Assembly (NCBI GenBank): GCA_964035545.1
Contig: OZ037766.1
Span: 33,511,672-33,575,671, forward strand
DNA length: 64,000 nucleotides
Direction of reading: 5' to 3'
DNA from: Bugula neritina
Taxonomy: Eukaryota > Animalia > Bryozoa
A model generated the notes under the pieces. The model had not been told where the DNA came from. It was given only the letters and a program-made list of their open reading frames with translations, and made no database searches. Shown here piece after piece: positions 24,640-56,859 of the stretch. How positions within the stretch are numbered: position 1 is the stretch's first letter; every line of letters begins with the position of its first letter. The translations under genes were made by a program, and so were the position numbers.

Positions 24640-24970
24640 CTTCGCAAGGCACCCTCAGCCATCGAACTCAATAATATTCCAGCTCAGTGCCCTCAGCCCT
24701 TTCCTTAGTACTCCGTCCTCGCAAACTGAAACATAGCCATGGGCCTCATAAAACCAAACGCTTGTGAAAATGGCTTAAAACAGCACAAGGTTGGTAGTCA
24801 CTGAATTCATTGACTCGAGTTGATGTTTTGGCTCTCGGAAAACGATATCTATACAAACACTGCATTCAACAACCCACTATTTTCGGCTGCTTTTAGCGAT
24901 TTCAATACTTGCAATGCATTCGCTGATGCTGGGCATCAGAAGTCGTAGAAATGGCAGAGACTACGTACGA
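24640..24970 (+). promoter_or_regulatory. CpG-enriched promoter/first-exon-like patch of the C2H2 gene
   Basis: Local CpG excess in a CpG-poor background; ends in ATG GCA GAG ACT AC|gtacga. Confidence 0.5.
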
Positions 24971-27900
24971 CTTTAAGTTTTACATGCATTCTAGTCTGAT
25001 AGTGAATAAGAATTAATAATACTATTAGTACCTCGGTATTAGCTAATGCGTATCAATTAAAGTTAGTATGGCTATAGTCCATAATCATAATGGATATCAA
25101 ATTCAATATGAATCACTATGAGTATGACTATCAGTATCACTATCAGAATGAGAATGTCAATTTCATTATGATTTTGATAATGTAAATGATACTCATAATG
25201 ATGATGATTATCGTTATGATAACCAAATCTGAAATCAAGTGAAATGATAATGATATTGATAATCGCTTATCAGTATGACAGTATGGGTATCACTTAAAAT
25301 TAAAGTGAATCATAAACATAATGATAATCATAATCACTTGATAATGATGATCCTAATCATAGTGGAAAACTAAAAGTAAATGTTCAGCATAATGGTAATG
25401 ATAATTTTTAACTTAAAGTTGATGAATATCATTAAGTTTAATTATAAAATTTTTAGTGAGGCTGAAAGGTTTAAGTTTGAGTTTCACTGTGGCTATCGGT
25501 ATCATACTGATACTATGACTATCAGTATTGGTAAGGCGATCTTATTTTTTATCTTTAAGTCTAGGATTATAAGTATAACATTAAGTTTAACTATAGTCTG
25601 TCTCTATAAGTATAAGTAAGTGTATAACTAGAGGTATATCACTATGACTATCAGTATCGTCACCACTGCCCGTATGAGTATGAGTATCACTAGGGGTATG
25701 TAGCTAGTGCAGGTGATTTTATATACGAGTCTTTTTGTACACATCTGCTAGTGATAGGTTGAGTCATACAACACTTCTTATAAGTAGCCGGCATATTTTA
25801 TTTCACTGTATGCTTTGGCTAATTATTATTGTGATATGTAGATGTTGCTTAGGAACTGCTCTTTTGCTTTAGATATTGTTATCATCAGTGGGACTAGATG
25901 GCAGCACATAGGGAATAGGTAACATAGGTACTGTATTAGTGTGGCCATAGGCTACCAATATAGGCATGGTAGTAGCTATCAAGTGTCACTCATTAGTATC
26001 CCTATCCTTATGACTATGATATTTATAGTTGTTTAATAACAACTGTAGTATTGGTATCACAACTCCTGAAATAACTACAAATTGGGGACTCAGTGAAAGA
26101 TTAAAGGAGTTTAAATGACATGGAGTAGATATACTATTAGCACAGCACAATATCGTATCTTTAAATGTCAATGAAACTGTTGTAGACAGCTTCATATGTG
26201 ATGGTGTGAACAGTAATGAAGTAGCAGAAGCTGTCCATAAACATGAGATCATATGATTCAACAGCTAACCCTCCTCTTGCTATGGCCCATTGTGTAAGTT
26301 TCTTTCTTCCAAATACACTGTTTCTATGCATGTATGTAGCTTTATAGAGTATAGAGTTTATAATGTAACTCAGGTGAGAGATGCTGGAAATAATGGTTAC
26401 ACTGGAGTACTATTTCTCTACCACACACTCACTAATCAGGTTATAGTTCAGTGGACAGGAGAGAATCTTGATGAAGATATCAAGGTACAGCTGGAGAGAT
26501 CGTTGTTGAGCAATATAAGAGCTAAAACTTCAAAGTTGAACTCGGCAGGTCTATCATCTCTACTGTCTATATCTATTATAACTATGTCCACCAACTCTAC
26601 TGTCTATATCTATTATAACTATGTCTACCATCTCTACTGTCTATATCTATTATAACTATGTCTACCAACTCTACTGTCTATATCTATTATAACTATGTCT
26701 ACCAACTCTACTGTCTATATCTATTATATCTAGGTCTACCAACTCTACTGTCTATATCTATTATAACTATGTCTACCAACTCTACTCTATATCTATTATA
26801 ACTATATTTACCAACTCTACTGTCTATATCTATTATAACTATGTCTACCAACTCTACTGTCTATATCTATTATAACTATGTCTACCAACTCTACTGTCTA
26901 TATCTATTATAACTAGGTCTACCAACTCTACTCTCTATATCTATTATAACTATGTCTACCATCTCTACCCTCTATATCTATTATAACTATGTCTACCATC
27001 TCTACCCTCTATACACATATACATGACAGACATGATGGAGAACATACGCCAAAAGTCCCATCTCCTGAATACAGACAAAACCATCACAAACCCTCAGCCT
27101 ACATCAGTTGATACATCTCTAAGCTCACGTCAGGGGCCTGTGACCACTACCTCTTACTCTGACACAAGCTCCAACCCTCCACTCATGTCTACTGCAGTCT
27201 CTCAACGTCTTAAACCTCAGTCTGAAGTTGCCTCGCTATCATTCAGTGAACCTTTAGCTCTGGGTGAGTGCATCTTATATCAAACTATTTCTACATGTTG
27301 TACTGTTTCATTACAACTATATTAATACATGATAATATTCAATATTAATACAAATAATCGTATAGCATTTTATGCTTTATATTAGTGGTGGCTACAATAT
27401 GCATAATTATAACTACTGGCCAAACTTTACTTCATAGTGTGAAGTCACCTTATTTATAATATAATACATCTGCATTTGTGTATGCTTGATATTTTAGACT
27501 TTGAAGTGAAATCAGAATCCGGGTTTGAAATTGACAATTTAGGTAAGTCAACATTTGGTGGGAATCACTCTTAGTTTTAGTTATAGTGTTAGTTGATATA
27601 CTCGGTTAGTTAGTTGATATACTCAGTTAGTTAGTTGATGTACTCGGTTAGTTAGTTGATATACTCAGTTAGTTAGTTGATATACTCAGTTAGTTAGTTG
27701 ATATACTCAGTCAGTTAGTTGATATACTCGGTTAGTTAGTTGATATACTCGGTTAGTTAGTTGATATACTCGGTTAGTTAGTTGATATAACTCAGTTAGT
27801 TAGTTGATATACTCAGTTAGTTGATATACTCAGTTAGTTAGTTGATGTACTCGGTTAGTTAGTTAATATACTCGGTTAGTTAGTTGATATACTCAGTTAG

Positions 27901-28763
27901 TTAGTTGATATACTCAGTTAGTTAGTTGATATACTCAGTCAGTTAGTTGATATACTCGGTTAGTTAGTTGATATACTCGGTTAGTTAGTTGATATACTCA
28001 GTTAGTTAGTTAATGTACTCGGTTAGTTAGTTGATATACTCAGTTAGTTAGTTGATATACTCGGTTAGTTAGTTAATATACTCAGTTAGTTAGTTGATAT
28101 ACTCAGTTAGTTAGTTGATATACTCAGTTAGTTAGTTAATATACTCAGTTAGTTAGTTGATATACTCAGTCAGTTACATGCTGTGTTGCAGAATCTGATC
28201 TACCATCACAATATTTGGAACAACCTCCAGCACTCTCAAGAAATAAGTCAGCTTCAACAAAGGTCAGCGTGCCTGTAAGTAGCACAGTGAGACTGCATCG
28301 GTGTAGGATGTGCGACTACAACGCCAAGTCTAGGGGTGACTTGATAAGACACAATCAGTGTCACACTGGGCTCAAGCGCTACTCCTGCAGTATCTGTGAC
28401 TTTACCTTCAGTCACCTAAACTCTCTGAAGAGACACTTTCTCTGTAGACATACGTCAGAGAAGCCTCACCAATGTCCTCTCTGCTTCCGGCGTTTCTCCA
28501 GACAAGATATCTTCGCCAGTCACATGAAAACTCATAACCAGAGAGGTCACATGACCCCTTCTAGTCAAATGACTACCACTGGTGTCAGCAGTGTTGGTGA
28601 TGGTGCACAGCCGCCCGTATTCCAGAATGAACCAATTATGTTTCCATTCAACTTAAATAGTCCTTCTCAGTGTAGCATCTCTGCAGCTAACACATCACTC
28701 AGTCACGCTTCACCAAAGTCTCCCAGGAAACATTCTGAGAATACTTCTGACTACTGTGATTAG
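24951..28763 (+). CDS. C2H2 zinc-finger protein with 3 C-terminal fingers, multi-exon
   Basis: Exons 24951-24964 and 25853-25918 (both tentative), 26340 or 26355-26548, 27030-27263, 27498-27542 (DFEVKSESGFEIDNL), 28192-28763, all phase-consistent. Fingers CRMC..H..H, CSIC..H...H, CPLC..H..H with TGLKRY/TSEKPH linkers. AATAAA at 28891. The 5' structure is uncertain. Confidence 0.8.
24995..25700. repeat. Cryptic 3/6-bp periodic low-complexity tract with drifting motif (tract A)
   Basis: For example ATGAGT ATGACT ATCAGT ATCACT ATCAGA ATGAGA; no single consensus over the whole tract. Confidence 0.7.
26549..27012. repeat. 37-bp minisatellite (GTCTACCAACTCTACTGTCTATATCTATTATAACTAT)n filling the intron
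   Basis: About 12 units starting at the donor GT. Confidence 0.95.
27587..28175. repeat. 21-bp minisatellite (GTTAGTTAGTTGATATACTCA)n filling the intron
   Basis: About 28 units. Confidence 0.96.
28192..28763 (+). CDS. Last exon of the C2H2 gene, three zinc fingers
   Basis: ORF 28215-28763 with three canonical CxxC-x12-H-x3/4-H motifs; acceptor ttgcag at 28191. Confidence 0.93.
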
Positions 28764-29179
28764 CTGTTTGGCCTTGCACATGACAATACTTAACACATGC
28801 AGTTTTTTCCCACACAACCACCAACTAATGTAATAGCATTGTATTTGGTTTCATTCCAATACTTTTATATCAGTTCTTTCTTCCAATCAAAATAAAATTA
28901 TAATTCAGGTTTTACTTGATAGAATCTTTGTCAAAGTACGCAATCGAATAATGTATTTGCAAAATAAAAATATATATACGGACTAGTGAATTTAAAAGTA
29001 TGAGAATTTTCCTCAAAATCCTATAAATAGTAAATTTCAAAATATTAGAAAATGCCTACCAGAGCTGCCTTCCACTAGCAAGGATGCTTTGCTGCTGCAA
29101 TTTTTGTTTAATGCATGCTTAAAAAATCATTCACGGTATTTTGTACTTTTATAAATGTAGGCAGTATACCAGTAGAATC

Positions 29180-29450
29180 ACTACATCGTCTGCAGCCAAC
29201 TCTCCATGACCATCAATCACGTGGTCTGTTACGGAGGACAAAGCCGCAGACGTTGTAGCAAGGTCACTCGTAATGCTGCGTCCTAACCGCGTGGAGGTGA
29301 CTCGACAGATATTCGCTCACTTACAGTATTTGGCAACTGCTTCTAAACGTAGTCAGCAAAAAGGTTTTACTTTGCTCTAGATCTAATAGTCAAACTCACT
29401 ACTGTTATTGTCAAATGGAGTTTAAATTAAGTGATTGTGTGTGCGAGTAG
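29180..29450 (+). promoter_or_regulatory. CpG-enriched promoter-like patch with E-box CACGTG (about 29218)
   Basis: Local CpG excess upstream of the second zinc-finger locus; possible ATG at about 29415. Confidence 0.45.
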
Positions 29451-29454
29451 AGTA

Positions 29455-30030
29455 ATCAAATTGATTATCATAATCATAATGATGATAATCATCTTATCAT
29501 GATCGCAAAGTGATGATCATAATAATATTAACACTAATAGGTAATAACTAATATTACTGTTAGTATTACTAAATATAATTATAAGTACAGCCATTAGCAT
29601 TATAATTATATAACTGTTAGCAGCTAAGTATTGCATTTACTACCACTACTATTACTATTAGTATTAGTATTACTATTACTATTAGTATTATCATTATGAC
29701 TTAGTCGTATGACTATGAGTATGAGTATAAGTATAAGTATAACTAAACTATGAATTTCCGCATGTATACTCACATACTGTTACTCATACTGTAAGACTAA
29801 CTGTAAGAGTCAGTGAACAACTTATATTTTGAGAACTACTCACATCCTTATTCCTCATCATATTTCATTAACTGATTAAGGACTTGGAATTGTTTATGGC
29901 CTGTAGTGTAGACAATAACTATGTGTATATTTTTATTATAATTAATATTATGTAATTTATAATTAATAATTTAATACTAATACTAATAATAATGTTAATA
30001 GTGATACTCATACTTAACACTCACAACGAG
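29455..30030. repeat. Cryptic 3/6-bp periodic low-complexity tract with drifting motif (tract B)
   Basis: ATCATA..., TATTAG TATTAG TATTAC, TATGAC TATGAG TATGAG TATAAG TATAAG, ACTCAT... Confidence 0.7.
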
Positions 30031-36299: not shown

Positions 36300-37261
36300 T
36301 AAAATCTAGTGGCTTTGACAGTGAACATATACTTCTTACCTGCAAAGAAAAATCAAAATCAAACCTTAGCCTTAGCTTTAGTCTTCATACATATATTTTG
36401 ACATGCAAAGTGAACAGAGAAGTGCATTAAGAAAGGGGAACAGAATGGACTAACCTCTCCTGTTGAGTTTGCTTTATCTGATGTAATCTTTGTGTAACGC
36501 AGAGGTCAATGTGGGAACCTGGGCCCAGGTCATTAAATATTCCGACAGCAGCTTTTTCACGGGCTCAAACTACAAAAGTCTTAAGACTTTAGAGAGGAAA
36601 GCAAACTGGAAAACAAAAACTTTGATCGGAAAGAGAAAAGGTAACTGCTATAAGAGGAAAGCAAACAGGTTTACAAGAAATATAACAAAGAGAAAAGTGA
36701 ACAGCAAAACAAATTTACTAGAATGATTTCTACATGCTACATATCACGTACCTACTTGTCCGGTTTCTATCCGTTCTTGAAGACGGTCATAGCAATTAGC
36801 GAGCGGAACATCAGAGGATCCATGAGAGAGTTTGGGGCCTGTAGGGACCACTCAAAGAAGTAGAGACTAAAGACAGCATGCCAGCTTATCAGCAGTAGAT
36901 GTTTGGTGCCATATAATGTATCTTGGAGCAGTTCTTGTTAGCTACCACAGTATCTTCTGTAGCCCTAGTATCCATGCCCAGGATAACTCCATCCTAAAAC
37001 ACAGTTTAGAGATATAAGTTGTGTAAACTCAATACTTTGCAACTAACATTTCCTATTTTTATTATGGCCATAACAATTGTTAAACAATAATAGCAATAAC
37101 ACCTAATCCACAAACAACTTTGTCTCAAACTGAATTTATTAACTATTTTTCAACAAATAAATTATGTGCATCAAAAAATGAAAAATGAAACTTACCTTAT
37201 AGTCGTGCCAGTACTGTAACCTTTTGATGCTGTAAAACCTTTAGATGAAAGATGAGCATTT
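36300..37261 (-). pseudogene. PSMB7: Proteasome subunit beta-7 (beta2) pseudogene, intron-containing, heavily deleted
   Basis: Minus strand: 37196-37261 NAHLSSKGFTASKGYSTGTTI; from 36993 downward [34 protein letters not shown]; then TGPKL..HGSSD and SLIAMTVFKNG*KPD; at about 36490-36550 GIFNDLGPGSHIDLCV. These are recognisable PSMB7 motifs in the correct order, with stops and deletions. Confidence 0.9.
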
Positions 37262-37438
37262 CTAAAACAACCAACTCTCAAGTTAATTCCTGTTGCTTGA
37301 AGAGAGATGTGCGTTTCCAAAGACTGAATGAAGAAAGAGCTGAAAGTGCAGGGTTTATATTAGTCTAGAAAATAGCTTTTTTCTGAAATAGCCAAAATAG
37401 CTGCACACAAGCAAATAACACAACAGAGGAAAACATAC

Positions 37439-37511: not shown

Positions 37512-40500
37512 ATGTTAATACAATCAAAGCTGTAATGATTCAACAAAAGCTTTCCATGCTCATGTAATGCCCAAACAATTTTTATGCCTTACAGTGTACC
37601 TGTAAAAGCACATATGCCCAAATGTCAACAGCGAACAGGTTATGCAGAATAGATAAGGTGGACAACATATTTTCTCCCTTATAGTTCAGTAGAAATATAT
37701 AACACAGGAGTTACCAACCTTTCCCTAATATTCCCCCTTTCATGAATATTTACTATTAATTTCCCCCTTTTGACAAACTGTGAAATTTTTTTATAACTGG
37801 CATCATGATAATATAGGATACAACAATATACATTATATGAAAAGTGAAGCAGTATTTACAGCTCTAAATCCTGCATGGCACACTAACAACTATCAAGACA
37901 AACATCCACAATAAAAGTGACTTTAAAAACAACAAAATTTAGTTGAAGGACCAATAACCAGTTTTAGAGACTATAGAGAATAAGAACATTGTATATAATG
38001 CATAGTACCAGAGGCATATAGTTTAAATGTGAGACTTTGGCAGAATTTGGCTGCTACTGGTAAAACCCATTCGGTAGTAATTTAAAATTGGAATATTCAG
38101 CTGATTGTGGTAAAATAATATAATTAGGGTATAAAAGTAGACATCAACCACCGAGGGTATCGTAATCAGGTTAAGATAAACTGCATAAAACATCCAGGCC
38201 ATACCAACTTATAGAGAAGCAAAATAGTATATCAGTTCAACTTTAGTCAAATTTTATTAGTAATTCTTGAAAATATAACTGGATAAAAAGTTTGAAACTG
38301 TTTACTGGTAAAATTGTGATTAATTAAAAATTTCCGAATAATTCTAGAAGTAGTTTAATCAAGGATTCATGTTATACTTATTAGGAATTGTTGGGACTTT
38401 ACATAAGTTGGGAAAGCTTTTCCCTAATGCATTATAGCTTTTCATGCATTATTACAGCTATGCAAGCTATATTACAATTTTCTGACACTCATTACGGCTA
38501 CTAAACAATAGCTGACTTTTTTGACTGGTATAACAACCCAGTATTTTCATCTATCTTTAAACTTGCGTCTTGCAACTTATGATGTAAAGGCTTTTACATC
38601 GCTTCTTTCTTTTAGACTGCTACAATAAATATCTCTATATATTAAAAACAACAGGAATTACCTCCATATAGCTCATCCAGCTGACCCATGTGAAGAATAA
38701 TCTAGAATGGCTTTGTCCAACTTTATACCCAATTGGTTGGTTGTCTAGTAGATGACCATGTGACCATTACAGCAGTTACTGCAAGAAGAAAGCAGTCTAT
38801 AATTATGTGGTGTTGCATATCATGAAAAACAATGAAATAAAATACTATAAATATAACTTATTTTATAAAACATTATAATTGAAGAAAGCAACGAAAGTAA
38901 AAATGGAGAACAACAGGGGGAGATTCACATTTTTTATTGATGTATAGGTGTACAGAAGAGTGTCACAATTAATTTTAAAAAATGATTTGTTGAAAAAGCC
39001 ATAACCAAAAATCAAAAATGAAAGCCTGACTTCGTTTTCTTACCACAAGCAAGCATAGCACTATGTAAACTTATATTTTTTAATAAGAGGTTTTCACACA
39101 TTCAGCAATAAATTGACAGACCAACAAATATGATTGAAGAGTGCTCATTTAGATGGAATGAGGTTTGGTAGTATTTACAAGCTCCAAAATCAAATGAATT
39201 ACTTATTGATGGTTTTCAATGAATACAATGATTGTATTAACATGAAATTAAAATCCTAAAATAAAATCCCAATCATGTGCTGATTTTTCATCTCTTCAGT
39301 CAAGTTTGTATGGAGCTAGGGTAAGGTTGGCAAGAGCTATTACAATAGGCTGTTTTAACTTTCATTAGAAACACATATGGCAATTCTTGAATGAAATAAA
39401 CAGCTAAAACTTTTAAAGCTAAATATAACAACAGAAAAACAGCCAAGTGTTACGGTAGAATTAATCAACAGTGGACTTCATAGCTAACAGGACATATAGT
39501 ATCAGTATTTTATGTGCCGAACAGTACAGTTTCATTTTAATCATCACTTTATAGTACAATTCTATGTGCACAACTTCCCAAAGTTATATATTCTACACCT
39601 TACACAATTATATTGCAACTTTTATCAAAAGCACATGCTTCAGTGTTTGAGTAGTAACGCTTGTTATGCTTATCCTAAATCATACTTTGTCCAAGGGAAG
39701 GTAGAAAAAGCTGAATCTAACATCATTTATGAGAGTAGCTATCCCCTGGTAGTAGCTTTATGAATGCTAAAACCTAAAACCTACTAGCACATAACATAGG
39801 GAAAGAGCAAATATTGTTACAATAAACAATTCATTTAGATACAAACCTGAACCGATGAAAACTTTCATTGAATCAAACACAGAGAGAAGACAACTTCTAC
39901 ATCGCATCTCATGGATTTAAAACCAGTCTTGATAGCAAGGGAACTTTTATCTGCATGTGGTTGAACACGACTACAAAACAGACAATAAATATTCTAAACT
40001 ACCTTAATATATAAAACATTTTATTTTAATTTGCTAATAGTAATTGTTTGCAGAGCTGCGATACTAGTCTACTGACTACAAGTGATTAACTTAAACAAAT
40101 TCACAAGACTTGGAGTTAACAAGACTAAAATAATAAATAAACCACAACATTGTTACTACCACTTCAAACAGAAATAGATATACATGAATTATGGACATCA
40201 GTTATCAAGAAGAATACAAGAAGCACAAGATAATTCTTCCAATACATCGTGTAAAACTAGTAAAATTGAAACCACAGAGAAAATTATTGTAAATAATAAA
40301 TACCTAATTATAACCAAGATGGGGCTCACAGAACTGACCACAGTTGACTAGGTCACATCTTCCTGGTGTAGACCATATGTTCCCTAATCATGTGTGAATA
40401 TCTGAGCTGCTCGGAGACATTCTAAAAAACAAAACACATTTGACAAATTCAAGTTGTTGAATAAATGATGACAGACATGTATGAGACAAATTATAGACTG

Positions 40501-40512
40501 TAGAATCTAGAG

Positions 40513-41034
40513 CATGGGTGCTCAACCTTATTGGAAAAAAGGCCGCAAAAAAATTTGAGCCACCATAAAGGCCACTAGAAAATTCAATGTCAATTTCACT
40601 GTCAAAACCCTCCATATATCATTAAAGCCTATTTTTAAATTTATGTGTTTATTTTGTTATGAAAAACAGATCCAGGAGAATAACTTGAATTGTTCAAGAA
40701 AGTAAGTCTTTTTTGTACATTGTACAAAGCACAGTATGGTTTGATAATTTGGTTTAATGTCCGATGCCGATATGTGAAGAATATCGTCCAGATAGAAGTC
40801 CGTTAGCCTCTATCTGAATTTACTTTGGGCATATCCCATCCGAGAGAATAAGTGTTCACATCAATATGTACTAGCAGTCATGATTCATATAGTAAACTTG
40901 GGAATTAGTAAAAAGCAAAATTTAGGAAGGATTGAAACTGAACTAAATTCTCATTTTACTAAGAGACCAAAAGGCGACATTTACCAGCTCAAAAGGCCGC
41001 CAAAAGTCAAAAGGCCGCAGGTTGAGCATGGCTG
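40513..41034. mobile_element. hAT (Buster/Charlie-type) non-autonomous element, 522 bp
   Basis: Perfect 8-bp TSD ATCTAGAG (40505-40512 and 41035-41042). Imperfect TIRs CAtgggTGCTCAACCT / AGGTTGAGCAtggcTG. Empty site in the paralogous block at 47048-47055. Confidence 0.92.
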
Positions 41035-44000
41035 ATCTAGAGTATGGGAAATTTGTATCATGATAAAATCAACTTAGTCTACAGAACCAGGAAAGACACT
41101 TCGTTGAATCAGAAACTTTTTCAGTTGAAACAACGTAGACTGAATATTCCACTTTTTAATTTCAAGGAATGATTATGACTATAATATGAGTATGTAACTG
41201 AAATAAAGTCAAACAAATTGAATTATTGGGTAGGAGTTAAAATTTATTGCACAGTTATGGCTATTTTGAAAAGAAAAGCTGATTTCAATTATGAGCCACA
41301 CAGTACAGAGCAGCAAATCAATGAATTAAAATCATAAGCTTGTACATGTGGTGAGCAAAGCAACAGCCGCACTATTACAGAAAGGTCATTGTAAAATGTT
41401 AGTGTAAATATTTGTGCAGAGGGATTGATATAGAATCACAAAAATTATGTCTAATGATCATATATCACAACAAAATACCTTAATTATTAAAACGGCATTA
41501 TATTAATATATAAATTAACCATCCCTTCAGTGTGGATAACAATTAATTAAGGCAAGCAGATAAAATCAAGCTGAAGACCATGATGAGTATGTAACTGAAA
41601 TAAAGTCAAACGAATTAAATCATTGGGCAACAGTTAAACTTTATTATACTGGTAAGGCTGTAGTGAAAAAAATTAAAACATTTGATTTCAATTATACTAT
41701 TATTCTCAGTATTGATTTTGTAGTTCAGTTCAACAGACCAGAGAAGAACAGGGTAGAAGTTGTGTTGAAATTAGGCTAATTTGGAGCTAAGCTAAATTGA
41801 AATTCATTATATGCCTTGCAGTTGTATTAACTCAAATGACTGCATAATCAAATTGATAAAAAATGAGTGGCAGCTTATAAATTGAATAAAATATTCAATT
41901 TGAATTCTAAGCCTATTAATGAATACAGATTAACAAACAGTTTACTAAAGACGGTACAAAATTATTAAATGACGTGCTAAATAAAGGATTACTTTGGTAA
42001 GATGACCAAGCAGTTTCAGTTGCTGGACCAGTCAGTTTGAAGGGCAACTTAGTAATGACAGGGCAGAAATTGGCAGAAATTGAACAGGTGAGCTAGAAAA
42101 ACTGCTTGTTCGAGAAGCTATTCAGGTGAATGATGAAAATAAATGTTGCAACTTGTGATTTGACTTTTCAAATTTTTATGGAGCTTTATCATCCTTCTAA
42201 CCATTCACCATTAAATCACTAATTTCTCTTATCGTATGCAACTAGATATTACCATGAGGTTAGGGACCTAAAGAAAAAGGACAGGGCTGTGCATGCACTT
42301 GCTTACTCCCAACTCTTGCTTACTCCCAACTCTGACTACTGGTTGCAGGTAAACATTCAACTACTTGTTTGAAATGTGTTGGGAGGTCATGGTCATGAAT
42401 TACTAGACATTCTGTATAGCATTAAGTTTACTATAATATGTGTGTACTGTCACTGTATGCCTGATGAAATAACTTTTATGGACATCGATATTAAATAGCA
42501 GGAATTTGGGATAAGGTAACTTTAGAAAATAAAGATTTAAAATAAAACATACCACGGACAGATAAAGATGAGGCTTACAGGGATGGGAAGAATAACACAG
42601 AGAGAAAAAGAGTAGAGGTTGCTGTTCCTCTGCCCATTCTGTAACACAAAAAAATAGTGAATAAACTTGTTCAAAATACATTAGAAAAAAGGAAGCAATA
42701 GAAACATCACCTGTAGAATTTTTTCTATCAAAATGACAAATTTACTAGTAAATTCCAAGCATTCAAAAAACACTCAACACTATGTTAACTCTGTAGAAGT
42801 ATATATTATATCTAAAGTTTCTAAGTGGTTAAATGATTGAACCAACATCAAAATTTTCTACTCATATATAATACAGATGTGTGATATAAATAGGAAATCT
42901 AGTAATGTAATGAGTCTTGTGAAACAGTATAAATTTACAGCTCTAAAACCCACGTCGCAAACCAACAATTGAAAGAATCAAGACAGAAATTCACAATAAA
43001 AGTAGCTTTAAAACAATAAAATTTAGTTGAAGCATGAAACACCAGTTTTAGAGAATATAGAAAATAAGTATATTGTATAATGCATACTACGAGAGACTTT
43101 GACAAAATTACGCTGTACATGCCACAGTTAGCCCTAATTTGCTAATAATTCAAAAATGCAACATCCAGCAGCATGACTTAATGCAATCTCATATTTCTAA
43201 ACATTTATAGTTCTCAATAATTTAAACGTATACTGAAAATACATCAAACTTGAATATTTGGTAAATAATAGTAAGAGAAGTAGAGGCTATGATATAACAA
43301 CAGAAAACAATTACAGGACTGGAGAAAATAATGAGTTGAAATAACACATACCACGGACAGATACAGATGAGGCTTACAGGGATGGGAAGAATAACACAGA
43401 GAGAAAAAGAGTACAGGTTGCTGTTCCTCTACACATCTTGTAAAACAAAAAATAGCATATAAACTTGTTCAAAATACAATAGAAAAACGGAAGCATGAGT
43501 TATGGCAATAGAAACATAACCTGTAGAAATTTTTCCTCCAAACTGACACTCAACACTATGTTAATACTGTATAGGAGTATATGTTATATCTAAAGTTTCT
43601 AACTGGTTAAATGATTGAACCAACATCAAAATTCTCTACTCATGTATATAATACAGATGTATGATATAAAGTAGGAAATCTAGTAAAGCAATGAGTCTTG
43701 TGAAACAACTTACAGAGAAGTAAAATGCTATATCGGTTTAGCTTGAGTTCAACTATAATTGTTAATTCTTGAAAATACAACTTGATGAAAAATTTGAAAC
43801 TGTTTACTTGTTGAATTGTGATTAAATGCAAATTTGTGAACAATTCTATAGATATATAAATAGCTTCACCAAGGAGACATGTTATACTTAATAAGTATTA
43901 CCTCCATATAGCTCTTACAGCTGACACATGCCAAGAATAATCTAGAATGAAATTGTCCAACTTTACACCCAATTGGTTGGTTGTCTAGTAGATGACCATG

Positions 44001-47000
44001 TGACCATCACACCAGTTACTGTAATAATAAAGTAGTTTATAATTATGTGGTATTGCATATGATGAAAAACAATGAAATAAATATAAAAATCTAAATACAG
44101 CTCATTTATTACAACAGCAGTAGGAAAAGCCAAAAAAATGAGAAATGGAAAAATACAAAACAATCATATTTAATCTTGAAGATTAATCATTACTCAAATA
44201 AGTAGAAGAGTGTCATCATGCTCAATTAAGTTAAAATATGATTTGTTGAAAGAGCCATAACCTGATAAATGATAAAGCTTATAGCAAATATACCTGATTG
44301 TTACCAGCAAGCTAAACATAGTTACCAAGTGAGAACAAAATACTTCCCTAGTCTGGAGGCTGCTGAGTCACAATAAACTGATCAAACTATTCTTACTGAT
44401 AGAGCAGACAATTTGAAAGTGTGAGCCTTTGAATATCCTAAAGAAAACAACTACCTCATCATATTCCAAGAAACTGAGAGAAGACAACTACATAATGAAA
44501 ATTTAGGAAAACAAAAGAAGACAACTTCGCAATGGAACTTCGGGAAAACAAGAGAAGACAACTACATGATGAAACTTTAGGAAAAGACAACTACATTAGG
44601 AACAAGCAGCAAGTTGAACGAATTCCTATTAGAAAAGTTGGCAGAGAATAAAATTATAACCTCACGTGAAACAGTATGGTACATTATTGATTATAACCAA
44701 AGATACACTATAGAATAAATACATCTACATACATATGTGGATTTAAATTTATAGAATGTGGTTGAAAACCACAAGTTTTCTTTATAAATAACTAGAATAG
44801 TCAGAATGTGACACAACATTATAAACATCATAGTTTGGAATGTTTTACAATATTGGAGAAGATGTTAAATATTAGAAGAAATTATAAATCGGAAAACAAC
44901 ATCAGTAGATTAAAACACTGAAGGGAGCTAACCTAAAAAATACTGAGTAGAAACAAACAACAGCTTTCACACTGATGAGAAACTGTCAACAGTCTGAAAT
45001 AGCAAAAGTGACAACTAAGAGCCACAGAGGCAGCATTATCTAAGGGACTTTCAACATGCATCACAAAACATGCTAAATAAACTGAAAGAAATGAATCAAC
45101 ATATTATAGACTGTTGAAACAAAAAAAATTAACTAAGCAGAATCGGAAGGAACAGAATGCATGGGGAGGCAGCAGCAGCTGTTAACAGACAATATTAGTA
45201 GCTTGAATATGCACCAACTAATAGATATAGGAGTAATGGCCTAGTAATACTAGACATACTAGGTAAATTATGCATGCAGATCATATATAATAACGGTGGT
45301 AACCTTTTACTATACTGTAATCGGTGTTAGTAATGACAATAAATTATGCATATTATAATAATTACAAAATAAAATGCCTAACCCAAAATTTTAAAATGAA
45401 AGCCCGACTTCGTTTTCTTACCACAAGCAAACATAGCACTATGTAAACTTATATTATTTAATAAGAGGTTTTCACACAGCTAGCAATAAATTGACAAAAT
45501 AACAAATATGATTGAAGAGTGCTCATTTAGTTGGAATGAGGTTTGCTGCTAGCATTTACAGGAAACAGCTTAAACAACTTCGAAATCAAATAAATTGCTT
45601 ATTGATGGTGTTCAACAGAGGTAATGACTTTATTAACAAGAAAGTAAAATCCTAAAATAAAATCCCAATAATGTGCTGATTTCTCATCTCTTCAGTCAAA
45701 TTTTGTATTGACATTCAGACAAACAAGGATAAGATGCATATATTTTCACTTCTACTCAGCTCATATTCTCCTGGCTATATGTTCCAACACACTACTAAAA
45801 ATTTAGACATGCGAAAGATTATAACCAGCTAACCTCACACTGCCAATAGAGTAGTATGCAGTTCACCTCAGTCTGAAAATAGCTCAGGTCAAGTAGAGAT
45901 CAAACAACTCCAACTAATACCAAACCATCCAGAAGGAATATTATGAAGCAGCAATCAGTAACCTGTAAGTGAAACAAACCAGCACTGAGTCTGAGTCACT
46001 CAGGTTGCAGACGCATCTAAAGCAAATGAAGCTGTAAAGGTATATATATGGCATCTTTCCATATGGAGCTAGGGTAAGGTTGGCAAGAACTTTTACAATA
46101 TGCTGTTTCAACTTTTATTAGAAACATGTTTGGCAATTATTGAATCAAATAAACAAATAAAACTCTTAAAACAAAATAAAATGACAGAAAAGCAGCCATG
46201 TGTTACAATAATGCTAATCAACAGTAGATTTCATAGCTAATAGGAGCAGATATAGGTCAACTGATTTTACTTCACAGCCGTGCACTGGAAGTTTTACTAA
46301 TTCCAAGAGTTGGTAGTGAAGGTTAGACAACTTCAACTTAATGAAAGGAAAAGTGAATATTGTTGCAATAAGCAATTCACTTAGACACAAACCTGAACCG
46401 ATGAAAACTTTCATTGAATCAAACACAGAGAGAAGACAACTTCTACATCGCATCTCATGGATTTAAAACCAGTCTTGATAGCAAGGGAACTTTTATCTGC
46501 ATGTGGTTGAACACGACTACAAAACAGACAATAAATATTCTAAACTACCTTAATATATAAAACATTTTATTTTAATTTGCTAATAGTAATTGTTTGCAGA
46601 GCTGCGATACTAGTCTACTGACTACAAGTGATTAACTTAAACAAATTCACAAGACTTGGAGTTAACAAGACTAAAATAATAAATAAACCACAACATTGTT
46701 ACTACCACTTCAAACAGAAATAGATATACATGAATTATGGACATCAGTTATCAAGAAGAATACAAGAAGCACAAGATAATTCTTCCAATACATCGTGTAA
46801 AACTAGTAAAATTGAAACCACAGAGAAAATTATTGTAAATAATAAATACCTAATTATAACCAAGATGGGGCTCACAGAACTGACCACAGTTGACTAGGTC
46901 ACATCTTCCTGGTGTAGACCATATGTTCTCTAATGTGTGAATATCTGAGCTGCTCGCAGACATTCTAAAAAACAACACACATTTGACAAATTGAAGTTGT

Positions 47001-48055
47001 TGAATAAATGATGACAGACATGTATGAGACAAATTATAGACTGTAGAATCTAGAGTATGGGAAATTTGTATCATGATAAAATCAACTTAGTCTACAGAAC
47101 CAGAAAAGACACTTCTTTGAATCAGAAACTTTTTCAGTTGAAACAACGTAAACTGAATATTCCACTTTTTAATTTCAAGGAATGATTATGACTATAATAT
47201 GAGTATGTAACTGAAATAAAGTCAAACAAATTGAATTATTGGGTAGGAGTTAAAATTTATTGCACAGTTATGGCTATTTTGAAAAGAAAAGCTGATTTCA
47301 ATTATGAGCCACACAGTACAGAGCAGCAAATCAATGAATTAAAATCATAAGCTTGTACCTGTGGTGAGCAAAGCAACAGCCGCACTATTACAGAAAGGTC
47401 ATTGTAAAATGTTAGTGTAAATATTTGTGCGAAGTTTAATACTCCTGCAGGGGGGTTGATATAGAATTACAAAAATTATGTCTAATGATCATATATCACA
47501 ACAAAATACCGTAATTATTAAAACGGCATTATAATAATATATAAATTAACCATCCCTTCAGTGTGGATAACAATTAATTAAGGCAAGCAGATAAAATCAA
47601 GCTGAAGACAGGTCTACTGTAAAATGAAAAATTTATAGAACGAAAATGAAAAAAAAACTGTAAACACTGAAATAAAAATAAAATATGATACAAGCAAAAA
47701 TGGCTTGGCATATTATATAATTAATGGTACAGCAGCACCAATATTATGCCTAGACAAGAAATTATCCCAAAGGATAAATTTTCAATAAACTAAAGAAATG
47801 AGCACTGAGTCACTGCATCAACTATTAGCTAGAAAAACTTACATGGAACTAAAAGCAGTATAACAGCTAGGGTGCTAAAATGTATAGCTCACTATTTGTA
47901 GTATTACTAACATTATTATTCTTAGTATTGATTTTGTGGTTTAGCTCAACAAACCAGAGGAGAACAGGGTAGAATTGTTACCTTGAAATCAAGCCAATTT
48001 AAAGCCAAGCTAAATTGAGATTTATTATATAAGCCTTGCAGCTGCATTTCCTCAA

Positions 48056-48451
48056 TTGAGTGCTTTAAATATTTGTTTTTGGAAATTTTTTAAAAGTTCT
48101 TAAACTTGTTCATTGAGCTAAAACATATAAAACACTATAAATTAAGCTCATGAATTACAACCATGTTCAGTACCAGTGAGATGCACAGAATAAAAAGTGT
48201 CTATCATTGAAACTGTAATTAAATCAAGTTTATGTTGATAATCGAATAAAATTTGTTCAATTAAACAATTCATTTATAATTTTTATTATAAATCTTTAGT
48301 GAAAACATGTAACAAAGGGCAAAAAACTGGGTGAAATCATCCGCAACTACCCTCTGTAAACATATAATAATATGAGCCACGCCCCCTACCGATAAGTAGC
48401 ATAATGGTGGACAACGCCCTAAAATCGCCGCTCTCATATCAATCATATCTG
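48056..48451. mobile_element. Right half of the TIR element at 51452-52278, captured in a duplication
   Basis: Similar to about 51885-52278, including the right TIR and flanking GGGTGAGG. Confidence 0.7.
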
Positions 48452-51451
48452 GGGTGAGGTTGACAAGAGCTTTTACAATAGGCTGTTTTAACTTTTATTA
48501 GAAACATATTTGGCAATTTTTGAATGAAATTAACAGCTACAACTTTTAAAACAAAATAAAACGACAGAAAAACAGCCATGTGTTACGGTAGTGTTAATCA
48601 ACAGTGGATTTCATAGCTAATAGGAGCAGATATAGGTCAACTGAGTTCACCTAACTGCCTAGCACTGGAAGTTTTACTAATTCCAAGTGTTGGTAGTGAA
48701 GGTTAGACAACACAAACTTAATGAAAGGAAGAGTAAATATTGTTGCAGTAAGCAATTAATTTAGACGCAAACCTGAACTGATGAAAAGTTTTGATGAATG
48801 AAACACAGAGAGAAGACAACTTCTACATGTCGGCTTGTGAGCATCTCACAGATATAAAACTGGTCTTGATATCAAGGTATAGCTTCTATCTGCATGTGGT
48901 TAAACACAACTACAAAACAGACAAGAAATATTCTAAACTACCTCAATAAATAAAACATTTTATTTTAATTAGCTAATATAGTAAATGTTTGCAGAGCTGG
49001 GATACTAGTCACAAGATGTCGAGTTAACAAGACTAAAATAATAAATAAAACATTACTTTTTCACTATTAAAGATGAAATAGATAAACATAAATTATGGAC
49101 ATCAGTTATAAAAAAGAATACAGAAAGTACAAGATAATTAATTCCTAATATTCTGTTAAATTGGTAAAATCAAAAACACAGAGCTAATTATCATAAATAA
49201 TAAATACCTAATTATAACCAAGATGGGGCTCTCAGAACTGACCACAGTTGGCTAGATCCTATCTTCCTGGTGTAGACCATATGTTCTCTAATGTGTGAAT
49301 ATCTGAGCTGCTTGGAGACATTCTAAAAAATGAACACATTCGATGAATTAAAATTGTTGAATAAATGATGACAAAACATGTATGAGACAACTTACAGACT
49401 GTAAAATCTAGAGTATTGGAAATTTACATGGTGATAAATTTTTATTATGATAAAATCAGCATAGTCTACAGAACCAGGAGAGAAACTTCTTTGAATCAGA
49501 AACACAACTTGTTTTAGTTGAAGCAGCTTAAACTGAATATTCCACTTTAACTTTTGAATTTCGATCCATGATTATGACCATGATGAGTATGTAACTGAAA
49601 TAAAGTCAAACGAATTAAATCATTGGGCAACAGTTAAACTTTATTATACTGGTAAGGCTGTAGTGAAAAAAATTAAAACATGTGATTTCAATTATACTAT
49701 TATTCTCAGTATTGATTTTGTATAGTTCAGTTCAACAGACCAGAGAAGAACAGGGTAGAAGTTGTGTTGAAATTAAGCTAATTTGAAGCTAAGCTAAATT
49801 GAAATTCATTATACGCCTTGCAGTTGTATTAACTCAAATGACTGCAGAATCAAATTGATAAAAAATGAGTGGCAGCTTATAAATTGAATAAAATATTCAA
49901 TTTGAATTCTAAGCCTATGAATGAATACAGATTAACAAACAGTTTACTAAAGACGGTACAAAATTATTAAATGACGTGCTAAATAAAGGATTACTTTGGT
50001 AAGATGACCAAACAGTTTCAGTTGCTGGACCAGTCAGTTTGAAGGGCAACTTAGTAACGACAGTGCAGAAATTGGCAGAAATTGAACAGGTGAGCTAGAA
50101 AAACTGCTTGTTCGAGAAGCTATTCAGGTAAATGATGAAAATAAATGTTGCAACTTGTGATTTGACTTTTGGAACTTTTATGGAGCTTCATCATCCTTCT
50201 AACCATTCACCATTAAATCACTAATTTCTCTTATCGTATGCAACTAGATATTAGCATGAGGTTAGGGACCTAAAGAAAAAGGACAGGGCTGTGCATGCAC
50301 TTGCTTAGTCCTAACTCTGACTACTGGTTGCAGGTAAACATTCAACTACTTGTTTGAAATGTGTTGGGGGAGGTCATGGTCATGAATTACTAGACATTCT
50401 GTATAGCATTAAGTTTACTATAATATGTGTATACTGTCACTGTATGCCTGATGAAATAACTTTTATGGACATCGATTTTAAATAGCAGGAATTTGGGATA
50501 AGGTAACTTTAGAAAATAAAGATTTAAAATAAAACATACCACGGACAGATCAAGATGAGGCTTACAGGGATAGGAAGAATAACACACAGAGAAAAAGAGT
50601 ACAGGTTGCTGTTCCTCTGCCCATTCTGTAATACAAAAAAATAGTAAATAAACTTGTTCAAAATACACTAGAAAAAAGGAAGCAATAGAAACATAACCTG
50701 TAGAGTTTTTTCTATCAAATTGACAAATTTACTAGTAAATTCCAAGCATTCAGAAAACACTCAACACTATGTTAACTCTGTAGAAGTATATATTATATCT
50801 AAAGTTTCTAAGTGGTTAAATGATTGAACCAACATCAAAACTTTCTACCCATATATAATACAGATGTGTGATATAAATAGGAAATCTAGTAATGTAATGA
50901 GTCTTGTGAAACAGTATAAATTTACAGCTCTAAAACCCACGTCGCAAACCAACAATTGAAAGAATCAAGACAGAAATTTACAATAAAAGTAGCTTTAAAA
51001 CAATAAAATTTAGTTGAAGCATGAAACACCAGTTTTAGAGAATATAGAAAATAAGTATATTGTATAATGCATACTACGAGAGACTTTGACAAAATTACGC
51101 TGTACATGCCACAGTTAGCCCTAATTTGCTAATAATTCAAAAATGCAACATCCAGCAGCATGACTGAAACTGAAAACTTGGACATGCGAAAGTAATAACC
51201 GGCTAACCTCACACTGCAAATAGAGTAGTATGCAGTTCACCTCAGTCTGAAAATAGTTCAGGTCAAGCAAAGATCAAACAACTCCAACTAATACCAAACC
51301 AACCAGAAGGAATATTATGAAGCAGCAATCAGTAACCTGTAAGTGAAACAAACCAACACTGGGTTTGAGCCAGAAAAGTTTCAGACATATCTAAAACAAA
51401 TAAAGTTGCAAAGATATGTAAATGATATCTTCATACGAAGCTAGGGTGGGG

Positions 51452-52278
51452 CAAAGGTGATCTATATGAGAGTGGCGACTTTAGGGAATCATGGGGACAT
51501 CATTATGCAGAATTCTGAGCTGCGAGTTTATATAAGTTAAAAAGGGAAAATTTTGTCACTTTTTTATTTCATTATTATTTCTATTTTATGTGTACATTTT
51601 TAATTTTACTTATTGCTATAGTTTTTAAACACATTCTTTATGCATATAAAATTAAAAGCAAGTTTAAAACTCGCTCACTAATAATTATGCACGTGTAGCT
51701 TAATATATTGACAATAGAAAGCCCAAAGTTATTCAATTTAATTTTAAATAGCATGATTCTTAGGATGAGGAAATTTATTTGAATTAAATTCTTAAAAATT
51801 ATCATTATTTGAACTATTTTAAAAAGTTTTATCTAATACTAAGCTCACACCTTTTAAGCCATAAAAACAATCATTAAATAATTCATTGAGTGCTTTAAAT
51901 ATTTTTTTTGTTTTTGGAATTTTTTTAAAAGTTCTTAAACTTGTTTTTTGAGTTAAAACATATAAAACACTATAAATTAAGCTGATGAATTACAACCGTG
52001 TTCAGTGCCAGTAAGCTGCACAGAATAAAACGTGTCCATGATTGAAACTGTAATTAAATCAAGTTTCTGTTGATAATCAAATAAAAATTGTTGAATTCAT
52101 TATAATTTTTATCATAAATCTTTAGGGAAAACATGCAAAACAGGACCAAAAACTCAGTGAAATTATCACGCAACAATCCACTGTAATTATATAATAATAT
52201 GAGGCACACCTCCTACCAATAAGTAGCATAATGGTAGACAACGCCCTAAAATTGCCACTCTCATATTGATCATCTCAG
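51452..52278. mobile_element. Non-autonomous TIR element (about 830 bp, about 35-bp TIRs, degenerate 8-bp TSD; P- or hAT-like)
   Basis: Left end CAAAGGTGATCTATATGAGAGTGGCGACTTTAGGG; right end CCCTAAAATTGCCACTCTCATATTGATCATCTCAG. Flanks are GGGTGGGG and GGCTGAGG. Empty sites GGGTAAGG occur in paralogues at about 39318 and 46072. Confidence 0.78.
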
Positions 52279-55200
52279 GGCTGAGGCTGACAAGAGCTTT
52301 TACAATAGGCTGTTTTAACTTTTATTAGAAACATGTTTGGCAATTTTTGAATGATATTAACAGCTACAACTTTTAAAACAAAATAAAACCACAGAAAAGC
52401 AGCTATGTGTTACGGTAGTGTTAATCAACAGTGGATTTCATAGCTAATAGGAGCAGATATAGGTCAACTGAGTTCACCTAACTGCCTAGCACTGGAAGTT
52501 TTACTAATTCCAAGGGTTGGTAGTAAAGGTTAGACAACTTTAACTTAATGAAAGGAAGAGTTAATATTGTTGCAATAAGCAATTCATTTAAACACACACC
52601 TGAACGGATGAAAAGTTTTGTTGAATCAAACACAGAGAAAACAACTTCTACATGTCGGCTTGTGAGCATCTCATGGATATAAAACGGGTCTTGATGGCAA
52701 GGTGACTTCTATCTGCATGTGGTTAAACACAACTACAAAACAGACAATAAATTTTCTAAAATACCTTGATATATAAAACATTTCATTTTAATTTGCTAAT
52801 AGTAAATGTTTGCAGATCGAGCTGATTAACTTGAACAATTCCACGGGACTTGGAGTTAACAAGACTAAAATTATGAATAAAAGATAACATTTTTACTACT
52901 TCAAACAGAAATAGATAAACATGAATTATGGACATTAGAATACAAGAAGTACAAAATAATGATTTGCCTAACATCATTTAAAATTGGTAAAATTGAAAAC
53001 GGAGAGAATTATCGTAAATAATAAATACCTAATTATAACCAACATGGGGCTCTCAAAACTGACCACAGTTGGCTAGGTCCTATCTTCCTGGTGAAAACCA
53101 TATGTTCTCTAATGTGTGAATATCTGAGCTGCTCGGAGTGATTCTAAAAAAAAACAAAACACATTTGATAAATTAAAATTGTTGAATAAATGATGACAGA
53201 TACATATGAGACATCTCATAGGTTCTAAAATCTAGAGTATTGAAAATTGTATCATGATAGAATCAACATAGTCTACAGAACCAGGAAAGAAACTTCTTTG
53301 AACAAGAAATATAACTTGTTTTTTTATAGTTACAGCAGTTTAAACTGAATTTATTCCACTTAAACTTTTTAATTTCGAACCATGATTATGACCATGATGA
53401 GTATGTAACTAAAATAAAGTCAAACAAAATAAATCATTCAGCATAAGTTGAACGTTACTATAGCGAGAAAAAAATTAAAATATTAGATTTCAATTATACT
53501 ATTATTCTTAGTATTGATCTTGTAGTTCAGTTCAACAGACCAGAGTAGAACAGGGTAAAAGTTACGTCAAAGTCAAGCCAATTTGAAGCTAAGCTAAATT
53601 GAAATTTATTATAACTATAATTATAAGCCTTGCAGTTGCATTTACTCAAATGACTGCAGTATCAAATTGACTAGAAATGGGTAGCAGTCTATCAATTAAA
53701 TAAAATATGCAATGTGAAATCCAAGCCTATGAATAAATACAGATCAACAATCAGTAAACTAAAAGATAACGTTGATAAAAAGTTATTAAATGACATGCTA
53801 AACAAAGGTTTACCTTGGTAAGATGACCAAACAATTTCAGTTGCACGACCATTCACTATGAAGAGTAACTTACTATAATGACCGTGCAGCAGACGTGCTC
53901 AGTGATCCGTAACCAATCATTGCTCAGTCGTCTGTAACTGACCACGTGATTATTGGGGCATGCGCTATATCTCATGACTCACTTCCAATGGTGTTACCAT
54001 TGAACTATAACTATAAGGTTATTGTTTCAGTTCAGTGGGTGTTACCAAATCAGCGATTTGTATGCAGCAAAAAGATCAATACTAATTTTAGTGCCTCAGA
54101 TTCTATGGGGCCTCAAGTTTCAGAATATAATGAAGGGAAAACAGAGATGTAGCAATCAAATACTTTTAAAAATTTGTCCTCTTTATGCAGCATTATCAAT
54201 CATGTTTAGGGCAAAATAAACAGGAAAAGATATCACTATGCTAAATTAACCATCAAGAAAAGAAACACAAATTAATGACCCAAAAAAACACAAAGAAATT
54301 GAACAGGTGAGCTGAAGAAACTGTTGTTTAATTCTAAAAGCTATTCAGGTAAATGATGAAAATGAGTGTTGCAACTTGGAATTTGACTTTTGCAATTTTT
54401 ATGGAGCTTCATCGTCCTTCTAACCATTCACCATTAAATCACTAATTTCTGTTATTGAATGCAACTTATAGATATTAGCATGAGGTTAGGGACCTAAAGA
54501 AAGAGGCCAGGGCTGTGCATGCACTTGCTTACTCCCAACTTTGACTACTGGTTGCAGGTAAACATTCAACTAGTTGTTTGAAATAAGTTGGGACAGGTCA
54601 CGGTCACGAATTACTAGACAATCTGTACAGCATTAAGTTTATTATAAGATGTGTGTACTGTTACTGCCTGATAAAATAACATTAATCCATAATTTTAAAT
54701 AGCATGATATTTAGGATTAGGGAATTTTTCGCTTATATAAAGCAATCTCATATTTCTAAACACTTGTAATTCTCAATAATTTAAACAGATGTTGAAAATA
54801 CATCAAACTTGAATATTGTTAAATAATAGTAAGAGAAGAAGAGGCTATGATATAACAACAGAGAGCGAAGAAAGGACTAGAAAACAAAGGTTTAAAATAA
54901 TACATACCAAGAGCAGATAGAGATGAGGCTTACCGAGATGAAAAGAATAACACAGAGAGAAAAAGAGTACAGGTTGCTGTTCCTCTGCCCATCCTGTAAC
55001 ACAAAAAGTAGTAAATAAACTTGTTCAAAATACAATAGAAAGAAGGAAGCATGAATTATGGCAATAGAAACCTAACCTGTATAATTTTTTCCTCCAAACT
55101 GACAAATTAATAAGTAGATTCCAAGCATTCAGAAAACACTCAACACTATGTTAACACTGTAGAAGTATATATTATATATAAAGTTTCTAACTGGTTAAAT

Positions 55201-56859
55201 GATCGAACCGACATCCACATTCTCTACTCATGCATATGATACAGATGTATGATATAAGTTATAGGAAATCTAGTAACGTAATGAGTCTTGTGAAACAACT
55301 TACACAGAAGTAAAATACTATATCAGTTTAACTTGAGTTCAAATATAATTAGTAATTTTTGAAAATACAACTTGATGAAAAGTTTGAAACTATTTACTTG
55401 TTGAATTGTGATTAAATGAAAATTTGTGAACAATTCTATAGATAAATAGCTTCATCAAGGAGACATGTTATACTTAATAAGAATTACCTCCATATATAGC
55501 TCTTACAGCTGACACATGCCAAGAATAATCTAGAATGACTTTGTCCAACTTTACACCCAATTGGTTGGCTGTCAAGTAGCTGACCATGTGACCATCACAC
55601 CAGTTGCTGTAAGAGTAAAGTAGTCTATAATTATGTGGTATTGCATATGATGAAAAACAATGAAATAAACATAAAATTATAAATTTATACAGCTCATTTA
55701 TTACAACAGCAGTAGAAAAAGCAAAAAAAAAGAAATGGAGAAATACAAAAAAATCAAATTTAATCTTGAAGATTAATCATTACTCAAATAAATAGAAGAG
55801 TGTCATCATGCTTAATTAAGTTGAAATATGATTTGTTGAAAGAGCCATAACCTAATAAATAATAAAGCTAGCAAATATACCTCATTGTTACCAGCAAGCT
55901 GAAAATAGTTACCAAGTAAGAACAAAATACTTCCCTAGTCTGAAGGCTGCAGAGTCACAATAAACTGATCAAACTATTCTTGCTGACAGAGCAGACAATT
56001 TGAAAGTGTGAGCCTTTGAATATCCTAGAGAAGACAACTACCTCATCATATTCCAAGAAATTGAGAGAAGACAATTATATAATGGAACTGTAAGAAAATA
56101 GGAGAAGACAACTACATTATGAAAGTTTAGGAAAACAAAAGAAGATAACTTCATAATGGAACTTCAAGAAAACAAGAGAAGACAACTACATTAAGAGCAA
56201 GCAGCAAGCTGAACAAATCTCTATTAGCAGAGTTGGTTGATAATAAAATTATAACATCACGTGAAACAATATGGTGCATTATTGATTATAATCAAAAACA
56301 CACAACAGAATGGATATGTAATTATACAGGGGTGTAAATGATATTTAGAAAAGACTGCAAATTTCCTCTACAAATAACTAGAATATTCAAAATGTGAATC
56401 AGAAACTTAAACAGATGGAAAATTTGTAATGTTTTACAATAATATTAGAGAATTTGCGAAATGGGGTTTGAGGTTTGAACTGAAAAACTGAAGAGAACTA
56501 ACATAAAAATACTTAGAAGAAACAAACAAAAGCTTTTACACAAATCTGAGAAACCGGGAACAGACAGAAATGGCAAAAGTGAAGCAGAGTGAAGTGAAGA
56601 CAACAGTCATAAAAGCATTCTACTGCCTGCATGTGTTACTAATCTGAATTCAGCAGATGAAGTGTTATATTAGGATCATAATTGACTTTGTAAACACTAT
56701 TCATAAAATACAGTAGATTACAAGAAGCAGGCCGTAATGGTGAAACTGATTGCCTCGAAATATTGAGTAGTGATTTAAAAAAATCAACTTTGGCAAAATC
56801 TGAGCATGATCATGGTGTTTAAACGGTATGAAAATACTTAATAGGGGATGAGGGAATAA

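Follow-up and report, generated by a model that had tools for sequence, protein, structure and literature searches.

A drifting six-base lattice behind promoters in the genome of Bugula neritina and its possible mutational origin

In the window analysed here, a stretch of 64,000 nucleotides from the genome of the bryozoan Bugula neritina, the DNA directly behind a CpG-rich patch consists of hexamers which resemble their neighbours while the motif keeps changing, and the question raised by this locus is what writes or maintains such a tract. We lean, with modest confidence, towards a mutational lattice linked to transcription starts, arising from 6-nt slippage together with short template switches; no function is required by the data. 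The features around the first tract are the following, with positions given in the window.

24690 to 24990, unstranded: CpG-rich patch 1 (o/e about 0.9), candidate promoter
24766 to 24789, plus strand: candidate 24-nt non-coding first exon, AG at its end and then GT
24995 to 25780, unstranded: tract 1, a drifting hexamer lattice with A-S-T / T-S-A triplets every 6 bp
25504 to 25528, unstranded: perfect inverted repeat within tract 1, 9-bp arms and 7-nt spacer
26186 to 26293, plus strand: first RNA-supported exon (related-lineage RNA contigs)
26374 to 26548, plus strand: coding exon (related-lineage RNA contigs)
27030 to 27263, plus strand: coding exon (related-lineage RNA contigs)
28192 to 28932, plus strand: last exon, with three C2H2 fingers and the 3' UTR (RNA contigs)

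The roughly 700 bp of drifting hexamers pointed out in the initial annotation proved to be real, with a lag-6 identity over 24995-25700 of 0.53 as against 0.297 +/- 0.018 in 1000 Markov-1 shuffles (maximum 0.35). Over the successive 6-bp lags from 6 to 30 the identity decays through 0.53, 0.44, 0.42, 0.38 and 0.35, reaching background by about lag 60, which indicates that the motif drifts; TRF recovers short pieces of the tract and no more. Since the identity at lag 3 is just 0.32, the period is 6 and not the "3/6" originally described. Tract 1 is strand-symmetric and lies in non-coding DNA at the 5' side of a gene with C2H2 zinc fingers. It had been thought to fill the predicted first intron, but it ends at about 25780 while the first RNA-supported exon begins at 26186, and it occupies about two thirds of the gap up to that exon.

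For the exons of the zinc-finger gene, protein searches were run exon by exon, and the start codon is probably at 26243, where the long frame begins. A word search returned no relatives of this gene, and the lattice is absent at two unrelated zinc-finger loci. The ATG at 24951, previously proposed to open a coding first exon, probably does not do so, as an A-to-T change at 24975 in another lineage turns codon 9 of that frame into a stop. The CpG patch at 24690-24990 is presumably an unmethylated promoter, and no RNA depth was found over the CpG patches. RNA contigs (X3 and X5) from two studies share 22 extra, unplaced 5' letters before 26184, which the 24-nt exon at 24766-24789 would fit, as would a spliced leader of equal length. 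No cross-lineage differences are listed within 24765-24809, and no paper on trans-splicing in bryozoans was found. A sigma-70 promoter scan stayed at chance level, this being a bacterial signal that is not applicable to a eukaryote.

Further tracts and their neighbours were recognized in the same window.

29100 to 29370, unstranded: CpG-rich patch 2
29393 to 29985, unstranded: tract 2, lag-6 identity 0.49
about 53330 to 53720, unstranded: weak fourth tract; a small CpG patch adjoins it at 53800-53960
about 57100 to 57790, unstranded: tract 3, lag-6 identity 0.48 over 57172-57787, with a weak tail to about 56860
57987 to 58670, unstranded: young MITE of 690 bp with 43-bp terminal inverted repeats

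The lag-6 identities of tracts 2 and 3 bear out their earlier description as equivalents of tract 1, and no collinear alignment exists among the three, in agreement with what had been seen by eye. The weak fourth tract was overlooked when it was stated that nothing comparable occurs elsewhere in the window; the CpG patch is gone from its relic copies near 41.6 and 49.6 kb, and the changes that separate its paralogous copies are too few to be informative. Tract 3 appears to sit behind the start of a minus-strand gene. The claim that each tract adjoins a CpG-rich patch holds in the counts of CpGs in the 600 bp to the left and right (18/2 for tract 1, 16/11 for tract 2, 4/25 for tract 3), except that the MITE supplies much of the CpG density next to tract 3. 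This MITE, which may be piggyBac-like, has at least 40 copies at 93-99%, some of them in tandem, and a TTAA-like flank; related ends also stand beside CpG patches at loci L003 and L023, which suggests that its insertion is promoter-targeted. Apart from the tracts, window positions 37800-57000 hold tandem duplications, nested in one another and 76-98% identical, of a gene on the minus strand; one exon of this gene lies at 55507-55624, and copies occur near 38.7 and 43.9 kb. Proteasome beta-2 (PSMB7-like) exons on the minus strand at 36740-37330 carry in-frame stops after the conserved N-terminal part and are probably a pseudogene fragment. Positions 59130-64000 consist of long 7-bp arrays, a G-rich telomere-like unit in 540 copies and then an AT unit, which are interstitial because the contig runs on past them.

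Beyond the window, the class was surveyed in 200 kb of another chromosome (G000:C1:20.0-20.2 Mb) and nine loci, which together with the window make up about 0.15% of the genome. We observed about 13 tracts in the 200 kb, totalling some 8 kb or about 4% of that DNA, and the lattice detector found nothing in 600 kb of Markov-simulated DNA. All of these tracts fall in the 128 kb containing CDC20, SRP receptor alpha (SRPRA) and eIF3L, where reading of the ORFs also indicates genes for an ASPH-like protein, GW182 and a dynein intermediate chain; the 72 kb with the genes for ankyrin, VWA and carboxylesterase proteins contain none, and there is no tract behind a DIRAS-like gene. A CpG-dense patch lies within 1.3 kb of 10 of the 15 unsupervised lattice peaks, compared with 31% of random points. 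Wherever protein matches fix the direction (CDC20, SRPRA, eIF3L, CDK, THAP, P2RX7_C and the window gene), the CpG patch comes first, then the tract and then the gene body, which upholds the proposal of a promoter-proximal, gene-side class; divergent promoters have one tract per side, and at SRPRA the tract begins directly past the donor of the coding first exon. The density of the lattice declines from 9 per 200 bp next to the start to the background of 1 by about 1.2 kb, and the CpG o/e passes from 0.85-0.98 before the start through 0.67 in the first bin to about 0.37 beyond, the sharp onset being partly by construction, as the anchors of these profiles were set by eye. The initial annotation had named three outcomes that would count against it, namely no enrichment downstream of starts, tracts aligning as copies of one mobile element, and tracts being coding exons; none of these was found in the 200 kb, the window and the nine loci. 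No published description of the class turned up in the literature searched, whose coverage mostly leaves out subscription journals. Two side observations arose from the same material. Between L028:9322 and L029:4500, two convergent promoter-plus-tract units, with no terminal repeats found, appear to be nested within a 6-kb eIF3L intron. On the small contigs C33, C66, C101, C110, C160 and others of G000, the reading frames of Ras and proteasome genes continue through TAA and TAG codons, by which we identify these contigs as ciliate contaminants in the assembly.

The tracts have 27% GC, are nearly strand-symmetric, and are depleted of side-by-side C/G pairs and of A-runs, with T-A-S-T-N-A as the commonest unit. 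Where adjacent hexamers differ, the change is mostly a swap to the complement at the middle base of an A-N-T or T-N-A triplet. Counted at positions with identical flanks at lag 6, C/G swaps occur in 267 of 448 cases with complementary flanks (60%) and 3 of 27 without (11%; p 7e-7), and A/T swaps in 81 of 331 and 34 of 586, respectively (p 1e-15). The swap rate is likewise 59-61% in the 13 tracts not picked by BLAST, and alternation exceeds 50% (p 6e-5). Whether a position is strong or weak is taken over from the neighbouring unit; which base it carries is not. Odd palindromes with arms of at least 5 number 104, against 33 in Markov and 52 in block-shuffled sequence, and perfect hairpins reach 0.86 versus 0.19 per kb. 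Hexamers correlate with their reverse complements at r 0.82, and C and G are balanced at the sites. Past the triplet, complementarity is 0.32 versus 0.29 at the next pair, with a slight excess further out. The stems of swapped pairs are hardly longer than those of unswapped pairs, so that most flips look like single-base events and are poorly explained by a true hairpin.

Turnover was followed by comparing the CDK tract (L004) with its orthologues L041 and L043, which represent two sister lineages or haplotypes; this evidence comprises one locus and summary counts for tract 2, and alignment within repeats is ambiguous. Against L041, the CDK tract shows 22 indels in 674 columns and the downstream DNA 6 in 933 (p 1e-4), a fivefold excess. 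Indels in multiples of 6 make up 11 of 27 in the CDK tract versus 0 of 16 in the flanks (p 0.003), the units gaining and losing length in 6-nt steps, and complement swaps account for 27 of 67 substitutions (40%) as compared with 16 of 85 (19%; p 0.006). When tract 2 is aligned with another lineage, gap letters number 121 in 520, and in its flank they number 30 in 1239, a gap density about ten times lower. In a DNA run of the same lineage, which may be the source sample, few differences were seen in tracts 1 and 2. One clear event stands at the start of the CDK tract.

L004 reverse strand 931-1100, G000:C1 near 22.624 Mb: near-perfect hairpin of 82 bp within the CDK gene's 5' intron

This fold-back duplication has a 4-nt loop and two mismatches and occurs, as assembled, in the Bugula neritina sequence alone, whereas L041 has ordinary lattice at this place; it is a candidate template switch that would postdate the split of the lineages. 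A 56-nt insertion with an 8-bp hairpin was also met in the CDK comparison. Separately, the 82-bp hairpin is a candidate de novo hairpin RNA, and at L043:1-90 the tract is interrupted by an insertion which ends in a short tandem tail and is probably a retroelement. Outside this lineage, the lattice is absent at the CDC20 orthologues of two other species (L035/L040, 11.8 kb including the promoter region; L039, 3.3 kb upstream), L031 ending too early for the comparison. These orthologues have 57-66% protein identity and come from metagenomes of plastic debris or biofilm and from a single run of undeclared species, the sources probably being other bryozoans. On these two informative loci, the class looks lineage-restricted. 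The two lattice-free species have a CpG o/e of 0.65-0.68, that is, less CpG depletion.

Read together, the sequences testify that strand-switch (fold-back) copying occurs within the tracts and leaves inverted duplications, that the middle base of A-N-T or T-N-A turns into its complement whereas the remaining positions are faithful copies, and that the lattice, strand-symmetric and hairpin-rich, turns over fast but keeps its place. On the mutational reading, the lattice would form in non-coding DNA within the first 1 kb or so behind active promoters of this lineage. DNA unwound or broken just behind germline-active starts may let a polymerase slip and briefly copy the opposite strand. A-S-T every six bases, being in phase and identical on both strands, would survive both slippage and switching and so spread, until halted by a coding exon or by distance from the start. 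The link to transcription and the enzyme behind the lattice are what we infer in this scheme. Fast turnover and absence in other species favour such an origin. Toy models with template switching show the same bias towards flips (11/13, 12/14 and 18/27) and yielded the observed words once, but none of about 28 parameter sets gave a uniform period of 6, 7-12-bp palindromic units appearing instead; for the fixed period, an enzyme step size or weak selection has to be added.

The main alternative, which is possible although on balance we doubt it, is that selection keeps the lattice as a chromatin element, a boundary or a licensing signal, where the unmethylated promoter gives way to the methylated gene body; it would be recognized either by a protein that steps 6 bp at a time or by way of DNA mechanics. 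Swaps at complementary-flanked centres would then be neutral, as they keep the set of dinucleotide steps. The tract lies where CpG o/e falls from 0.9-1.0 to 0.37, mutation models do not yield the uniform period, A-tracts are depleted, an active transposon retains tracts at both of its promoters, the two tract-free species are the less CpG-depleted ones, and nematode PATCs offer a precedent (PMC4947018; bioRxiv 10.64898/2026.08.08.743475), all of which agree with a chromatin element. Very fast indel turnover speaks against it, as does tract strength that ranges from strong to faint among housekeeping genes, with SRPRA and eIF3L weak. Linkers around a site are direct in 364 cases versus inverted in 68, ruling out a palindromic bZIP-type site array, and the context dependence of the swaps rules out a plain W/S minor-groove code. 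A bolder form, about which we are slightly more doubtful still, is that in Bugula a dedicated promoter-proximal process or reader with a 6-bp step writes or selects the strand-symmetric lattice behind active promoters, those of transposons included, and that the lattice marks the edge of gene-body methylation, as a second and independent periodic self-mark after PATCs.

That transposons carried the units in, with later remodelling, was considered with regard to the following element.

L018:4230-8812, equal to G000:C1:20074230-20078812: non-autonomous Kolobok element of 4.6 kb

It combines the hallmarks of Kolobok, that is, a TTAA target, an RR terminus, terminal inverted repeats and a THAP domain (PMC6004289). 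Between its TTAA ends and 146-bp inverted termini it holds convergent spliced THAP and P2RX7_C-like genes, and at least 25 copies of it, complete or nearly so, exist at 95-99%, many of them longer by about 280 bp at position 2424. No DDE transposase core and no long ORF were found in it, and the copy is for the latter reason taken as non-autonomous. Seeding of the lattice by Kolobok or other elements could draw on the two tracts within this young element, and on the C. elegans precedent in which Helitron minisatellites gave rise to PATCs. We nevertheless consider it unlikely, because the element's tracts lie behind its own two first exons, one behind each, and not at the element ends; no inverted or element ends flank tracts 1-3; and genome matches of tract 1 are pieces of 34-130 bp at 70-91%. 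With no collinear alignment among tracts and best local scores of 48-58, close to those of block shuffles, the tracts are not copies of one transposon, and the earlier view that the class is defined by periodicity, through a shared lag-6 signal, rather than by collinear sequence was sustained.

An RNA-level role, as a structured or binding-site-rich 5' intron or outron serving, for example, spliced-leader trans-splicing, seems more unlikely again. The 22 letters that extend the RNA contigs before the first acceptor, together with the lack of depth over the CpG patches, would suit it, and about half of the tracts fold better than shuffles. Several tracts do not fold, however, the antisense strand folds as strongly, and the near symmetry of the strands also argues against a role in RNA; at SRPRA and in the transposon genes, what precedes the tract is a coding exon with its cis donor, which leaves no outron. 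A conserved RNA fold was rejected, the z-scores being inconsistent among tracts and no Rfam match being found.

That the tracts are nothing but hexanucleotide microsatellites in decay (cryptic simplicity), with an enrichment in 5' non-coding DNA, is very improbable. Indels in unit multiples and the known 5' enrichment of microsatellites in plants (PMC1781443) are in favour of this, but unrelated loci share one period and one triplet rule, and the swap spectrum and its context dependence already largely refute this reading. Neighbouring units are not identical or transition-rich, as slippage would have them, complement swaps forming 165 of 264 in-context differences; ordinary minisatellites in the window mostly differ by transitions. 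Simulations of slippage with point mutation produced C/G swaps in 0 of 28 and 1 of 42 cases versus 268 of 449 observed, so the plain slippage footprint suggested at the outset does not account for the tracts. Finally, a coding exon for alternating beta-strand peptides is hardly credible: a 79-aa ORF with alternating residues does run through 25380-25619 inside tract 1, but no Pfam match was found, spliced RNA contigs leave it out, the period is 6 instead of 3 and orthologous tracts carry frame-breaking indels, and the coding reading of tract 1 is refuted as far as present data go.

If the 200-kb sample is representative, the genome would hold, very roughly, 10,000 or more tracts. Should the lattice be mutational, it would be the clearest case known to us of start-targeted strand-switch mutation rewriting several percent of an animal genome, and would provide thousands of replicate loci, with sister lineages, for measuring template switching, which is otherwise seen as rare events only. 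Should it be selected, it would represent a chromatin mark of a new type. In both cases, the lattice can serve to show where genes start, and which way they run, in the Bugula neritina genome.

With reference to known systems, one that comes close is that of the PATCs, non-coding clusters of periodic An/Tn (PMC4947018) which protect genes from silencing in the germline and for which transcription-coupled remodelling into a period has been described (bioRxiv 10.64898/2026.08.08.743475). The initial annotation had drawn a loose analogy to them, which fails in sequence terms: the 10-bp AA/TT signal is absent from the tracts (autocorrelation 0.20 at lag 6, 0.11 at 12 and about 0 at 10-11) and A-run hexamers are depleted 3-10 fold, so that identity with PATCs is ruled out, although the tracts may act in a similar way. 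Like PATCs, the Bugula tracts are pervasive, non-coding, intronic, lineage-restricted and defined by periodicity, and they have apparently been shaped by transcription-linked mutation; unlike PATCs, they have a period of 6 and not 10, A-tracts that are depleted and not clustered, a limit of about 1 kb behind the start, and a complement-flip rule. The 5'-enriched microsatellites of plants (PMC1781443) resemble them in being enriched behind the start, in decaying downstream and in unit-length indels, whereas the Bugula tracts lack a homogeneous unit, are dominated by transversion swaps, are strand-symmetric and keep one period genome-wide. Short-range template switches create short inversions and new hairpins and are enriched in AT-rich, intronic and regulatory DNA (PMC5453318, PMC7954356), and the Bugula tracts share all of these features, with one clear event of 82 bp. 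Known switches are isolated events, however, while those of Bugula appear to saturate about 4% of the genome and to build, mostly through single-base flips, one in-phase lattice at gene starts.
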